A DNA stretch of 63,447 nucleotides, filler included, from Salisapilia sapeloensis CBS 127946 (Eukaryota > Protista > Oomycota), in NCBI GenBank assembly GCA_023334545.1. It is 12 parts of 12 records of this genome, joined end to end, with 100 filler letters (N's around TTAATTAATTAA, not from the genome) between each part and the next. Parts side by side here need not be neighbours in the genome. Positions count along the whole stretch, not along the records: positions 16,025 to 40,706 come from JAADVB010000259.1; 11 more parts are not named here. The stretch is one strand, 5' to 3'. Positions 17,708-23,899 of this stretch are shown here, in pieces (within the stretch, counting starts at the first letter, position 1; the number at the start of each line of letters is the position of its first letter). The notes below the pieces were generated by a model. It did no database searches, was not told the DNA's origin, and saw only the letters and a program-made list of their open reading frames with translations. Position numbers and translations under genes: made by a program.

Positions 17708-20373
17708 ATGAGCCGCATTGGCATCGACCAGTCTTTGCTATGGCGAAAGCTATTCGCTTTTGATGAGTCAGATATAGGTCCTTTAAATGAAAGTAGTATG
17801 AAGGAGCTGCAGGAAAAGTTACAGTCTTTGGATACGAAAGAGGAAGGCAGACCGTTGCGTGCGATGGTCGTTCAGCGCCTGGCCTATTGGCTACGAGCTG
17901 ATATCGTGCCTACATTTCACGAGTTCTTCACATCTCTACGCCATAAACCAAGCGCGAGTTATAAAAAGAGGCGTCAGTTCGCTGCTAATTGTGTGGAGCA
18001 AATGACTTTAGCCATGCAGTTCGCGACGGACGCAATGACTCCATGCCAAGCACTGTCCGACCTTCTACCAAAGAGTTCAGATTCAGGTACGTTCATACTA
18101 TTCGTAGCTGTATGATACAAGAGCGTTTGACGATGGTATTTGTGGTAATTGTAGATCATGGTTTATCCGTTATGGAGGAAGTACTGCACATTTTCCGAGG
18201 TCTCGTCTTTGAAGAGCTTTCATATAAACAGGTAGATTCTTCCCACTCGTTCCAGTATCTAGTAGCAAAGCTGATAATTTTGTGGTTTTGGATGATAGAT
18301 ATTTATCGAAGTGATCGCGATGGCTTTAGCGAGCCGCTTGCGTACCATTCGATGTACGTGTCTTCGTCTAATTCGATGCTACTATCTACCATTCACCTTA
18401 CATCGTCAATAAGTAGCACACAAGACAGAGGAGAGCGACTTGACAGCATTATTACATGCGCTATGGTCCGTTGGGTGGAGCGATTTGGTGCAAGATGCTC
18501 TAGATCAGTTGTTACGAAGTCAATTGGAAGGCATCGTGTCTCTTAAATGTGGCGACTCCTTCACAGAAACCTACTTGACAGACATCCAAGAGTGGGTAGA
18601 AATAGATCTCCACCCATGGATCTATACAATGTGTCAAACAAAGTACTTTGGATCGAAAGACGGACAGGAATGGAAAAAGTTTATGCACACAAACCTCCAA
18701 GAGGTATAGTCCCTACCTCTTTATTCGCTCCTAAACTCTTAACGACACTATGACCGCATAGATGTTTGCTCGTAAACGCATCACCCAGCTCTTTGACATA
18801 ATCAAAGAGTTTCCTGAAAGGTAGAAAAGTACATTTAAATGTCTTTATCATGTCTTTATCGAATGGAAATGTGTAGTGTACCAGCACTGGAGGAATTAGC
18901 AGAGTGTCTAGAAAGCGGTCAATTATCTTCCCTTGTCATCGAAAGCTTCTCAAACGCTTTACGTACTCGTCTACTACATCCAGGCACAACGACAGCACAG
19001 ATTCTAGACATTTACATTCTTACGATTAAAGCTTTCCGCATCATCGATCGAGATGGTGTCTTACTAGAGCATCTTGGCGTACTATTCCGACAGTATCTAC
19101 TCAAGCGAAAGGATACGGTTCGTTGCATCGTATCGAGCCTCACTGAGGAAGAGGAAAGTGACTTGTACGATGAACTACGACGCACCTACGGCGGTCTGAC
19201 AGAGCAGGATGATGACAGTGACGACGATGAAGTGCGTTTTTCAGCTATATACTCTCCTGCTTATACTTATTAACCGTGACTATCGTATGCTATAGGAAGG
19301 CAATCCGGACGAGTGGGAGCCGGATCCGATTGAAGCTGAGCCGGGGAAGACTACTCGGAGCCGACGTAGTAATGACATTTTACAGATGCTAGTAAACATC
19401 TATGGCTCCCGTGAGCTCTTTGTGAACGAGTATCGGATGATGCTCGCAGATAAATTACTTCAGAACCTATCCTTTGATACATCTCATGACGTCGCGACGT
19501 TAGAACTATTGAAACTCCGATTCGGAGAAGAGTTACTGAAGCAAGGAGAGATCATGGTACGTGACATTGACGACTCAAAACGCTTAAACACATCGATCCA
19601 AGAAGCGTTCATCGAAAAACAACGTCCACTCGCCGTTCCAATAGACGCAACCATCGTCTCGCATGAGTTTTGGCCACGATTTAAAACGAATGACTTTGCA
19701 TTGCCACCACAAGTCAAGCAAAGTGTCGACATGTTCCAGGAAGAGTATAATCTGATGCGAAAGCCTCGATCGCTTGATTGGAAGACATCTCTCGGCTCTG
19801 TCCAAGTAGAAATTGAGCTAGAAGGAACGACTCGAGAGTTCACCGTGTCTCCTCTCCAAGCTTCCATCATTGTCTTCTTCGATGAAAAGGATAATTGGTC
19901 TACAGATGACCTATCGACACGTCTGGAAATCACGACGGAAGCACTGGTTCAGCATGCGTCTGTGTGGGTAAACTGTGGCATCTTGGTCCTGTCATCGGAC
20001 CGGAGTGAACTCATGGCTGCATCGTCCTTCCGAGATCGGGAGGACCAAGCCATGGTAGGTGAAATGGTGACGGCAGTATCGTCGGATGCACAAGCAGAGG
20101 AAGATCTAAGAGTATTTGAAAGCTACATCGTCGGGATGCTGACGAACTTTGGATCGCTCAGTCTCCAACGCATTCACAACATGCTCTCGTCCTTTGCACG
20201 CACCGGTGCTCAGCCATGTACGTCGTCGTAAAACTTTTTATAGCTGAACAGAGCTCAAGTATGTATTCTGCTTAGATAACAAGACGATTTCTGGACTATC
20301 TGCTATACTCGGGAAGCTCGTGGACAATGGAAGGTTGGAAGTAGCTGCTGGAGAGTATCGTCTCGCGCGGTAG
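17708..20373 (+). CDS. ANAPC2: Anaphase-promoting complex subunit 2 (cullin-homology), multi-exon
   Basis: ILDIYILTIKAFRIID, YLLKRKDTVRCIVSSLT, WEPDPIEA, MLVNIYGSRELFVNEYRMMLADKLL, LELLKLRFGE and LQRIHNML. The last exon ...LSAILGKLVDNGRLEVAAGEYRLAR* ends at TAG 20373. Confidence 0.9.
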
Positions 20374-20385
20374 AGTTGGAAGGTG

Positions 20386-20904
20386 TTAGAAACCATGGGG
20401 GCATGCCTTGTAGGTATGACCAAGAGATGCACAGGTGACACACATTTGCTCTGGTTCCGTTGTCGGGTCCTTCAAGGCTAATAGGCCGAGGCTATAGGCT
20501 CGTATCAGTCGCGTCGAGTAGCATAGTCCAGCATGTGGACCAAACTAAGAAAATTCCTTGTCAATCCATACGTTGATACAGTTTAGCACATTATCTACCT
20601 TGTGATCTTCTTCAAAATCCACCGGTACGACATACTTATCCTAATCCATACAGCAATTAGACCAGCAGTAGCCAGTAGATACTCCAACAAGCACCTCGAT
20701 AAACCCAACGGTCTTCTTCATCCGAACCGACGTCTTCTCATGAACTCGACGCGTGTACTTGACTTGTCGATAGATAAACAATGGAGCATGTACATCTTCT
20801 CCATCCTCTCCATCCTCTTTCTCTCTACTTGCTTTCACTCTCTTGACTCCTTTATCCTCCGACGTGAGGTGCTGTCGCTTCGCTTTCCGAAAGTATCCTT
20901 CCAT
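20386..20904 (-). CDS. Three-exon 136-aa protein with a DNA polymerase delta subunit 4 (p12)-like motif and a C-terminal CCHC zinc knuckle
   Basis: Exons 20904-20695, 20640-20599 and 20544-20386; two 54-nt GT-AG introns, phase 0. Product ends ...GFIE|DKYVVPVDFEEDHK|FGPHAGLCYSTRLIRAYSLGLL...CVTCASLGHTYKACPHGF*. Confidence 0.7.
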
Positions 20905-20969
20905 TATTATAAACACCCTTTCAAGATCGCCTATCAAACCCTCCACGCGTCCATTTTGAAAAAACGAGT

Positions 20970-21425
20970 ATGGAAGCAGAGCTCTCGACCGTAACTATTG
21001 CCGTCGGTGGTGCACTTGCTGCGGCTGCTGTCGGATTCACGGCAACGAAAGTCTTTGGCAGTAGCAATAAAAAAGTGACACAAGCTCCGAAGAAAGACAA
21101 GAAGGATAAGAAGGCATCCAAGAAAGCTAAGCAACAGGCGAAAAAACAAAAGAAGGAGGAGGAGGACTCCTCCTCATCTGACGACAAAAAGGTCGACTTA
21201 GATGAATTCGTCGGTGACTTTACCGACTCGGAGGAAGAGGAAGCGAAGCGTCTCGAGAAGAAGCGTCTTAAGCGCCGTCAGAAGATGAAAAAGAAGAAGA
21301 GCAAGGCGTCTGCTGCAGCCAAGAAGGAAGCTGCCGAGCAAGATCGCGCTGCTCAGGACGAACAGCAAGTCGAGGACGGATGGCAGACCGTTTCTCGCAA
21401 GCGTTCCATGAAGAAACAGAACTAG
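20970..21425 (+). CDS. Small membrane-anchored Lys/Glu-rich protein
   Basis: N-terminal hydrophobic helix (VTIAVGGALAAAAVGFTA), K-rich tail and DGWQTVSRK near the C-terminus; 151 aa. Confidence 0.75.
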   Translation: MEAELSTVTIAVGGALAAAAVGFTATKVFGSSNKKVTQAPKKDKKDKKASKKAKQQAKKQKKEEEDSSSSDDKKVDLDEFVGDFTDSEEEEAKRLEKKRLKRRQKMKKKKSKASAAAKKEAAEQDRAAQDEQQVEDGWQTVSRKRSMKKQN

Positions 21426-21506
21426 AAACCTAAAAAATACCACTAGGATGTCGACTCCCTTGATGCAAATCATTCGTACTCTTTCCGTCTTAAGCTGCTA
21501 GTTCAT

Positions 21507-22292
21507 CTAGAGCTTGGACTGCGGCTGCAGCTGCTTCAAGACCACCGGGAGCTTCATCGCCAAAGCCATATTGCCCTTCATCTTGAGCTTCCCCTTCATG
21601 AACGCTTGCTGCGGATTCAGCTTCCCACTCGCGATCGCAACAAAGTCCTCATCAGCTACCGTCAACGTCACATCCGCTGGCTTCTCACCTTTCGTCACAC
21701 TCGGTGACGACGACTTCAAATCGACGTTCCAAGCGCCACCTGGAGTGATGTTAAACTGGATCACACCCTTCACTTTCGATGCCATCTCCTTGCCATTGCT
21801 CTTGACAGCGTCATCCAGTGCCTGGAAGAGTGCTGCTGACTTGAGATTGCTCGTCTCCTTGGAAGTTGCGTTGCCATCAGAACTTTTCTGTTTCTTCATA
21901 TAGTCCTGTGTGGCTTTAATCACTACATTGAGCTTCATGGCCAAGCCCATATTGCCCTTGATCTTGACCAAACCTTTCATGAACGCTTGCTGCGGATTCA
22001 GCTTGTTCGCGATCATTTTCAAGAAATTTTCTTCCGACAACTACTTCCGACGTATTAGCCGTTATGTATGCATGAGATAGAAAGGTATATGTACGGAAAT
22101 GGTAATGTCCTGCTTATCGGAATCGCTCGCTTTACGGACATCGCCGTTGCCATTCTTGAGGTCGACGATCCAAGCACCAGCTTTATCGATGTCGAACTTA
22201 ATCACACCTTTGATCTTGGGCACGAGTGTTGGACCGACGTCGTTCACGGCTTGGCCCATGACCTGAAATACTTGCTCCGCGGAAGTCGCCAT
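21507..22292 (-). CDS. Tandem SCP2 sterol-binding domain protein, peroxisomal (PTS1)
   Basis: Two copies of KGVI.F.I...GAW.VDLK...LNPQQAFMKG.(L/V)K.KGNM.LAMKL; intron 22041-22094; C-terminal SKL. Confidence 0.92.
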
Positions 22293-22368
22293 GCTTATTT
22301 TCTCTCCTTTCGCCTTCTGACGTGACGGATCGCCGTTCGACGTGACATTGGTACATTAGTGGATCACG

Positions 22369-23899
22369 ATGCATGGACGAGCAGCGCAAGAGCATGCGCT
22401 TCGACAGGTACTGGCGCTTGGGGAGTGCAAGACAGAGATGCCTGCTCCATTGACAATCGTGTATGGAGGTGCTTCCACTGGCAAGTCTCTGTGCATGCAA
22501 GCTTTGGTATGGCACGACCGAGAGATCGTGGGAACCGTCGTGGATGCTGCTGGCATCTTCACGCCATCGGATTTCTATCGGGAAGTCTTGGCACAGATAG
22601 CAGATAGCCAAGGCAATAAATCGGAGAGTACCGAGCAAGATGAAGATGAACTTGTGATTGAAAAGCAGCCTCTTAAGACCAAGGAAGAGCATACCGATAA
22701 TGGGAGTAGCATGAATCTCAATTTTCTTAGTTTCGTGAAAGCGCTCGACCGAACGATGAAGCTGTGCCAGCAAAAGAAACTCTACCTGGTCGTCGATCAA
22801 GCTGACCGACTGCTCGATCGAAAACTAGCTTCATTGCTTACTTGCGTATGCTCCATTGGCACGCATCTCGCTTATACCAATGTACGCCTTCTACCTCACA
22901 TGAAATAAAGAGCATGGAGCTCATGTAGATAAAACTATAGATATTCAAGGAAGAGGTATGGAGTATCCACGTCGTGCTTGTTATGAGAGCCACGTCTCTC
23001 GAAATGAACCACGTCATCGCTCCTTTTACGCCATTATACATCTACTTTCCTCCATACACGAATGGTAACTTGGTATCCATTTGTATACCTGACAATGGTA
23101 ACCTCATCATCTATTGCGAGTAGAAGATATCACGAATATCCTAGTGGAGCACTTCGAGATGGAACATGTCGAACCGACATTCCGGCAATGGACGACGTAT
23201 CTCTTCGACCTCCTTCCAAGTGCTCGACTCGATTGGCTCGACTTTCGCCAGCAAGTGCAACAGCTACTACCGGACTTTGAAGCCTTTCTCGCACAAGACA
23301 CGTCCAATACGACTGTATCGTTGCAGCGATCTGCTAACGACAGTGTCTCCAAACTAATGAAGAAGCAGCGACGTCATCTCTTCGGCTTCGAGAAGCGTCA
23401 AGACAATTTCGATGGGACGCAAGAGACTTCCATCGCTGAGCTCAGCCACAGCAGTTTGCTACTAGTCGTAGCAGGCTACTTGGCATCTTTCAACCCGCAA
23501 GACACAGACGATGCATTCCTATCGTCCACAGGTGGACGCAAGCAAAAGCGGCGGAAGAAGGCGACGACAGCGGCGCCCACGACTTCCCAGAAGATGGTCA
23601 TCAACCAGCTTCTCATCGGCCCCAAACCTTTTCCATTGCAACGACTACTTGCTATCTACGACAACATCCGGCAAGAGGCTGCTGCTGACTTGGATGAAGA
23701 CGATCCGGATAGTACGACACCTCGAGAAGAGATTTTCACGCACCTCGCGACACTCATGCGCATGCAGCTCTTCCAACGTACGTCCGCAACGAACAGTCTC
23801 GACGACATTCGCTTCCGTTGCCTCGCGACTGCAAACTTTGTCCATGACGTTGCACGAACACTAGAGTTCCCATTGGACACGTACTTGAACCCAAGATGA
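22369..23899 (+). CDS. ORC5: Origin recognition complex subunit 5, 3 exons
   Basis: Walker A YGGASTGKS, LYLVVDQADRL, YFPPYT, and the ORC5_C motifs AGYLASFNP and QLLIGPKPFPLQRLLAIY. Confidence 0.88.

Follow-up and report, generated by a model that had tools for sequence, protein, structure and literature searches.

What is known of p12/POLD4 in the switching of DNA polymerase delta (Pol delta) between its four- and three-subunit forms comes mainly from mammals, and residues 42-107 of the human protein make up a compact domain of three short helices. PolD4/p12 has been described as not universally conserved (PMC10087552). In human p12 the PIP (PCNA-interacting protein) motif is K-R-L-I-T-D-S-Y, at residues 4-11 (PMC10087552, PMC7048817), and the main contacts are made by a hook, Leu101-Leu107, placed between the exonuclease domain and CysB (PMC7048817), while for the Q-x-x-L-x-F PIP motif of fungal PolD4 the binding to PCNA was shown by crystallography (PMC10087552). 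Our literature searches returned no report of POLD4 in oomycetes or diatoms. Here we describe a gene on the minus strand, at positions 20386-20904, of a stretch of DNA from the oomycete Salisapilia sapeloensis CBS 127946 (assembly GCA_023334545.1; 63,447 nucleotides (nt) with filler, joined from 12 parts of the genome and hereafter called the window), which an earlier note had presented as a hidden spliced gene for a POLD4-like motif fused to a CCHC zinc knuckle. What is new is a real gene of an uncharacterised, lineage-wide protein family; it is not, on present evidence, a clean case of an unannotated POLD4.

A three-exon gene and its protein family

By its sequence, the locus is a hidden gene of three exons, real and intact, which encodes a zinc-knuckle protein of 136 amino acids (aa). 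Its parts are the following:

20695-20904, minus strand: exon 1, 70 codons, initiator ATG at 20904-20902; the protein starts MEGYFRKAKR
20641-20694, minus strand: intron 1, 54 nt, GT-AG, phase 0, with an in-frame TAG at its end
20599-20640, minus strand: exon 2, 14 codons (42 nt), DKYVVPVDFEEDHK
20545-20598, minus strand: intron 2, 54 nt, GT-AG, phase 0, with an in-frame TAG at its end
20386-20544, minus strand: exon 3, 52 codons (20544-20389) and the TAA stop (20388-20386)

Exon 1 codes for the N-terminal motif, a short acidic/basic linker, the conserved segment H-x-P-x-F-I-Y-x-x-V-K-Y-x-R and the start of helix 1, and exon 3 for the F-G-P-x-x-G loop, helix 2, a linker, the CCHC knuckle and the conserved end of the protein. 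Because an in-frame TAG closes each of the phase-0 introns, the frame is open across the gene only after their removal, and for the same reason the list of open reading frames (ORFs) contains only a 101-aa piece of it. The two 54-nt GT-AG phase-0 introns proposed in the earlier note, and the 136-aa frame that they leave, were borne out by the minus-strand reading and the exon translations; the proposed junctions (20695/20640 and 20599/20544) proved correct as well, by the same reading, by the tiling of the exons on homologues and by the introns of Pythium insidiosum. In the alignment of the window exons with homologues (alignment A2), exon 1 was aligned with the N-terminal two thirds of P0003, P0035, P0036, P0006 and P0011, and exon 2 matched E-H-Y-E-I-P-A-D-F-E-T-S-H-K of P0003. 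The exon translations tile the homologues with neither gap nor overlap, and no residue is lost or doubled at either junction (exon 1 ends in F-I-E, against F-I-S in P0003, and exon 3 begins at F-G-P). The annotated P. insidiosum gene (locus L014) has two phase-0 introns at positions identical to those of the window gene, around a middle exon likewise of 42 nt, and the relative P0006 (locus L013) is encoded by a single uninterrupted ORF. The gene is single-copy in its own genome. A size of about 54 nt is normal for introns of this genome, since those of the neighbouring SCP2 gene (54 nt, GT-AG, 22094-22041) and of APC2 (58 nt, and roughly 60 nt in its upstream part, at about 19234-19295) are alike. 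For annotation, the gene shows that such short genes with several exons can be retrieved from homology and conserved intron positions.

Searches were run per exon or with natural homologues. The gene of the earlier note has conserved homologues: with exon 3 alone, an exhaustive phmmer search of 1.84 billion proteins returned 33 proteins at E≤1e-3 (best E 1.3e-12), the six best with E values between 1.3e-12 and 1.7e-9 and identities of 56-60%. The matched part is, in nearly every case, the extreme C-terminus of a protein of 120-340 aa; identity over exon 3 amounts to 57-60% with the oomycete members P0003 and P0002, and to 47% with the more distant P0009 of Hondaea. The named members come from Pythium insidiosum, Lagenidium giganteum, Pythium brassicae and the labyrinthulomycete Hondaea fermentalgiana, are annotated in databases as 'hypothetical' or 'CCHC-type domain-containing', and have no Pfam family. 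A feature search of the ESM Atlas gave, as neighbour of the P0003 domain, one hypothetical cluster of 95 members in which Bacillariophyta is the commonest phylum, and the structure search with the same domain yielded only zinc-knuckle and retroelement clusters of low TM score (0.35 or less), nothing p12-like being among them. Exon 3 itself brought no usable match from the ESM Atlas, and word-index protein searches, made with this exon and with exon 1 (the latter inside an 87-aa open frame), remained blank because of their length window and of the absence of shared 5-mers. Judged by these matches, the window protein belongs to an uncharacterised family of oomycetes, labyrinthulomycetes and diatom-like stramenopiles.

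In this family, a short motif conserved at or near the N-terminus is followed by a linker, variable and disordered, and then by a compact C-terminal domain some 80 residues long. In the window protein we were able to locate the following elements:

20875-20904, minus strand: PIP-box-like motif, MEGYFRKAKR (a sequence pattern)
20746-20790, minus strand: upstream conserved segment, HAPLFIYRQVKYTRR, reading H-A-P-L-F-I-Y-R-Q-V-K-Y-T-R-R
20482-20619, minus strand: p12-like core of the earlier note, 28 residues, D-F-E-E-D-H-K / F-G-P-H-A-G...S-L-G-L, spanning intron 2
20401-20442, minus strand: CCHC zinc knuckle, C-V-T-C-A-S-L-G-H-T-Y-K-A-C, with exact C-x2-C-x4-H-x4-C spacing

According to the alignment of 23 relatives (alignment A1) and to the AlphaFold2 (AF2) model of P0003, the C-terminal domain comprises two helices and an invariant G-P-x-S-G loop, and it closes with a CCHC knuckle. 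The model runs from a helix at residues 93-105 through the loop I-P-x-D-F-E-x-x-x-x-[YF]-G-P-x-S-G and a helix at 126-135 to the knuckle, with a block-mean predicted local distance difference test score (pLDDT) of 90-97 for residues about 91-160 and of 85 for 161-168, and with a disordered N-terminus. The upstream conserved segment, whose family consensus is Y-V-P-x-Y-I-H-K-N-x-x-Y-x-R-x-G and which holds a family-invariant Tyr (A1 column Y82), is poorly modelled (pLDDT 47-58, residues 61-90 of P0003), and this low confidence suggests that it is probably a binding motif. The linkers are rich in Lys, Glu and Ser, and each protein stops with a hydrophobic residue, always 2-4 positions past the last Cys. 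The window protein retains every zinc ligand and most of the family-invariant residues.

The C-terminal knuckle seen in the earlier note also stands, its C-x2-C-x4-H-x4-C spacing being exact and its C, C, G, H, C and P being invariant in alignment A1. In Pfam, zf-CCHC_4 scored 13.1 bits on window exon 3 (E 0.075), below the 27-bit gathering score (PF00098 / PF14392), a kind of cut-off that single knuckles often miss; the best relative matched zf-CCHC at E 4.8e-4, and the family profile matched the Air2 knuckle in the PDB at E 8.3e-4.

The resemblance of the N-terminus to a PCNA-binding segment, also put forward in the earlier note, agrees with a conserved short motif of the PIP-box type in the relatives, of which the window protein keeps M-E-G-Y-F-R-K-A-K-R. 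Six oomycete-type members read M-[AE]-K-I-[TS]-[SN]-F-M-R-x-T-K, of which the window motif is a shortened form; the labyrinthulid-type members (Hondaea P0009 and P0010) read I-M-D-M-F-H-S-R-K and I-P-D-L-F-K-Q-R, and P0011 has T-S-F-F-R-A-S-K-R-Q at the matching place. Common to all of these is a hydrophobic-x-x-aromatic-hydrophobic/aromatic pattern with a basic residue four places later, and hydrophobic-x-x-aromatic-hydrophobic with a basic residue four on is the core of the PIP-degron-type PIP box. In the window motif, Met takes the hydrophobic position and Y-F that of the aromatic pair, with Lys four residues after. Among the oomycete-type members the motif is conserved and the next roughly 50 residues are not. 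Diatom-type members have instead [KR]-[KR]-x-L-x-F (Q-R-K-L-V-F in P0007) and are also rich in S/T-P sites.

Putative function and its alternatives

We favour, with moderate confidence, the interpretation of this protein as a small PCNA-tethered nuclear zinc-knuckle factor, an accessory of replication or repair, whose PCNA binding and replication role we infer. The N-terminal motif would be a PIP-degron-type PIP box tethering the protein to PCNA, and might perhaps mark it for turnover in S phase or upon damage; the C-terminal domain would serve for docking to a partner, with the terminal knuckle in contact with single-stranded nucleic acid at the fork. Taken as a whole, such a protein would act as a small PCNA-associated accessory factor of replication or repair.

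Several observations weigh against this interpretation. The putative PCNA binding is read from a sequence pattern, PIP-like short patterns are common, and the window motif is without the three residues that precede the hydrophobic position. The motif of the diatom-type members fits a cyclin-docking R-x-L equally well. RNA-binding proteins are the commoner home of CCHC knuckles, and no replication family reached significance in the Pfam scans of the window exons and the relatives. Two replacements also affect the C-terminal domain: residue 5 of exon 3 (20530-20532, minus strand) is Ala, against the Ser of G-P-x-S-G in 23 of 23 relatives, and helix 2 starts with Ser, against Glu in 90% or more of them. 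These substitutions could reflect lineage-specific drift or a regulatory change.

A narrower case of the PCNA-associated factor, which we consider possible and rather doubtful, would make the family the true orthologue of PolD4/p12/Cdm1 in stramenopiles. The C-terminal domain would then lie between POLD1 (exonuclease domain and CysB motif) and the OB domain of POLD2, with the CCHC knuckle and the hydrophobic end in place of the third helix and the C-terminal 'hook' of p12. The build is that of p12, in which a PIP motif (putative in the family) stands at the extreme N-terminus and a disordered linker leads to a small C-terminal domain (PMC10087552, PMC7048817), and the hydrophobic end, 2-4 residues past the last Cys, is such as an inserted tail might have. 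PF04081 (DNA_pol_delta_4), whose gathering score in Pfam is 25 bits, was matched below this cut-off by four of the 23 members: P0006 (15.3 bits, E 0.026), P0003 (14.2 bits, E 0.056), P0009 (13.7 bits, E 0.08) and P0010 (11.8 bits, E 0.33). These come from three divergent subgroups; [YF]-G-P always falls on profile position 88, and the matches end at 107-109. They extend over about 38 residues, in the stretch that corresponds to the p12-like core of the earlier note, and cover the most conserved motif of the family, and PF04081 is the only non-knuckle Pfam family matched by several divergent members, most of the others being scattered singletons. Since these sub-threshold matches share one register on the most conserved motif in three subgroups, the p12 idea stays a live lead. 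The pattern F-D..Y-G-P-x-T-G..R..R-A..G-L-x-P-P, which we take to be that of human p12, lines up without gaps with F-E..Y-G-P-x-S-G..R..A..G-L..P of the family, which is a lead and not a test. In the earlier note, the 28-residue core was aligned without gaps with that of human p12, and the residue numbers given for p12 (Gln51, Thr62, Gln68, Arg72 and Leu101-Leu107; PMC7048817) agree with the p12 sequence used there.

Nevertheless, the p12/POLD4 reading of the earlier note was not established. All of the PF04081 scores lie below 25 bits, noise of similar E-value occurred in the same scan (Med13_C 0.013, PD40 0.014), and window exons 1 and 3 gave no PF04081 match at E≤10. A six-frame search of the whole genome found no canonical PF04081 either; this would suit an orthologue of divergent sequence, since PCNA, POLD1 and POLD2 are all encoded, yet it is weak evidence in an intron-containing genome. 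Sequence searches of the PDB with the family profile and with P0006 did not reach p12 chains at E≤10, returning knuckles, one weak glycoprotein match (E 0.77) and a chance match to eL31. The fold search of the confident AF2 model (Foldseek against the PDB, VIA-align against 48,161 representatives, and a second look with VIA) did not return p12, its best score being Z 2.5, to unrelated chains; domains this small are near the limit of such methods. The P0003 model has two helices and a knuckle against the three helices of p12, and the hydrophobic C-terminal hook has no counterpart, the family ending in the CCHC knuckle and 2-4 residues. The similarity of the family core to p12 is weak and register-consistent, and may stem either from remote homology or from convergence. 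That stramenopiles have an unrecognised fourth Pol delta subunit, a p12 homologue with a CCHC knuckle which keeps the N-terminal PIP-degron-like motif, is a proposal that we make only tentatively.

In the same genome, POLD1 is an intron-free ORF of 1083 aa (L011 503-3754, G000:C721), and POLD2 is present as a 417-aa ORF (L004 1471-2724, G000:C69) which spans the OB and phosphodiesterase domains; a further exon may extend it.

We regard it as unlikely that this zinc-knuckle protein binds RNA and has nothing to do with PCNA or replication (e.g., as a nuclear or nucleolar ribonucleoprotein, or an RNA-processing cofactor), in which case the basic/aromatic N-terminal motif would be part of a nuclear-localisation or other docking signal. 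The best knuckle matches of the family profile in the PDB, namely Air2, retroviral nucleocapsids, TUT7, SLU7 and Xrn2, point in this direction, as do the Lys/Glu/Ser-rich linkers, which many nucleolar proteins have, and the replication families that all fell below significance in Pfam. However, a single knuckle is uninformative on its substrate, and the Xenopus RECQL4-helicase-like (RecQ4) knuckle is also found among the PDB matches; in addition, an RNA-binding role leaves unexplained both the strictly conserved hydrophobic-x-x-aromatic pattern of the very N-terminus, with its basic +4 residue, and the register-consistent PF04081 matches. A non-functional locus, either a chance assembly of ORFs or a decaying pseudogene, is extremely improbable, since, although one family-invariant Ser is replaced by Ala and the N-terminal motif is shortened, the frame is intact over three exons with canonical splice sites, the protein retains its zinc ligands and the majority of the invariant residues, P. 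insidiosum has the same intron positions and the same five-gene synteny, and homologues are found down to E 1e-12.

Other candidates considered were a Cip/Kip-like inhibitor of cyclin-dependent kinases, Cdt1, an Emi1-like inhibitor of the anaphase-promoting complex (APC/C) and Sld2/RecQ4, and they were rejected, as their domain signatures appeared in no Pfam scan.

Stramenopiles include major plant and animal pathogens and key marine algae. A conserved stramenopile protein that combines the architecture of PolD4 with a weak p12-like core and a knuckle is a concrete candidate, and a testable one, for the subunit missing from oomycetes and diatoms. If the family were true p12, PolD4 would be extended to a major eukaryotic lineage without such annotation, and Pol delta would have an accessory subunit with its own nucleic-acid-binding finger; if not, the family would still stand for a new fork-associated factor, a small, uncharacterised protein that occurs across the lineage and has a probable motif for docking on PCNA.

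Gene neighbourhood

The order of genes in the window is APC2 (plus strand), the zinc-knuckle gene (minus), a 151-aa ORF (plus), a double-SCP2 gene (minus) and ORC5 (plus), and in P. insidiosum the five genes have the same relative order and orientation (window 18839-23887, L014 955-8571), an agreement that suggests an oomycete or a close relative as the source of the window. The domain content of the adjoining ORFs bears out APC2 and ORC5, which the earlier note had named as neighbours. The two genes next to the zinc-knuckle gene face it as follows:

20276-20373, plus strand: last exon of APC2, convergent with the zinc-knuckle gene, TAG stop at 20371-20373
20970-21425, plus strand: 151-aa ORF, divergent neighbour, its ATG 65 nt from that of the zinc-knuckle gene

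The stop codons of APC2 and of the zinc-knuckle gene (TAA, 20388-20386) are 12 nt apart, and the 3' ends of both transcripts must therefore overlap. The same tail-to-tail pairing is present in L013 and L014, with gaps of 21 and 89 nt, respectively. Because it was not found in Hondaea or in a diatom-like contig, we read the pairing with APC2 as inherited microsynteny and not as a functional link. The last APC2 exon, which follows a 58-nt, phase-1, GT-AG intron (20218-20275, plus strand), completes the ANAPC2 winged-helix domain, of which the long ORF reaches only position 34 of 60.

On the other side, a common promoter region probably serves the zinc-knuckle gene and the 151-aa ORF, since their ATGs are only 65 nt apart. 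The product of this ORF carries a membrane helix at its N-terminus and repeats rich in Lys and Glu, and ends in E-D-G-W-x-T-V-x-R-K; a clear homologue is found at the same place in P. insidiosum (L014 3853-4458, minus strand), and Pfam gave no family for it, only a chance-level match to CCDC22_CC. Further on, the SCP2 gene (21507-22292, minus strand) has two SCP2 sterol-transfer matches in a 177-aa ORF (21507-22040), which the 54-nt intron at 22094-22041 separates from an upstream 76-aa ORF (22062-22292). ORC5 (plus strand) is formed by at least two coding blocks, 22369-22908 (AAA_16) and 23441-23887 (ORC5_C, 124.7 bits).

Comparison with known systems

With the stramenopile proteins P. insidiosum P43SY_007791, Hondaea FCC1311_009122 and Lagenidium N0F65_002068, the window protein is collinear over its whole length and belongs to the same family; it is set apart from them by its length, among the shortest at 136 aa, by a shortened N-terminal motif and by the Ala that replaces the invariant Ser. 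With the CCHC clan (Air2, retroviral nucleocapsid) the family has in common the exact spacing of the ligands, the usual Gly before the His and the Pro after the last Cys, and it differs in that the knuckle is a lone one, located at the very C-terminus and packed on a helical domain, with a Pfam score below the cut-off.

Fungal PolD4 (Chaetomium thermophilum; S. pombe Cdm1) has a long disordered N-terminus and a compact Q-x-x-L-x-F PIP motif (PMC10087552), to which the [KR]-[KR]-x-L-x-F of the diatom-type members, Q-R-K-L-V-F in one of them, is alike, whereas the window protein and the oomycete-type members carry another, p12-like form of the motif. Human p12/POLD4 differs from the family in having a third helix and a hydrophobic hook where the family has the CCHC knuckle, and the family has, in addition, the conserved upstream segment Y-V-P-x-Y-I-H-K-N-x-x-Y. 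Both are small proteins in which a non-canonical, degron-type PIP motif (putative in the family) occupies the extreme N-terminus and a disordered linker connects it to a small C-terminal domain, and both have the pattern of a helix, an F-D/F-E...[YF]-G-P-x-[ST]-G loop and a helix.

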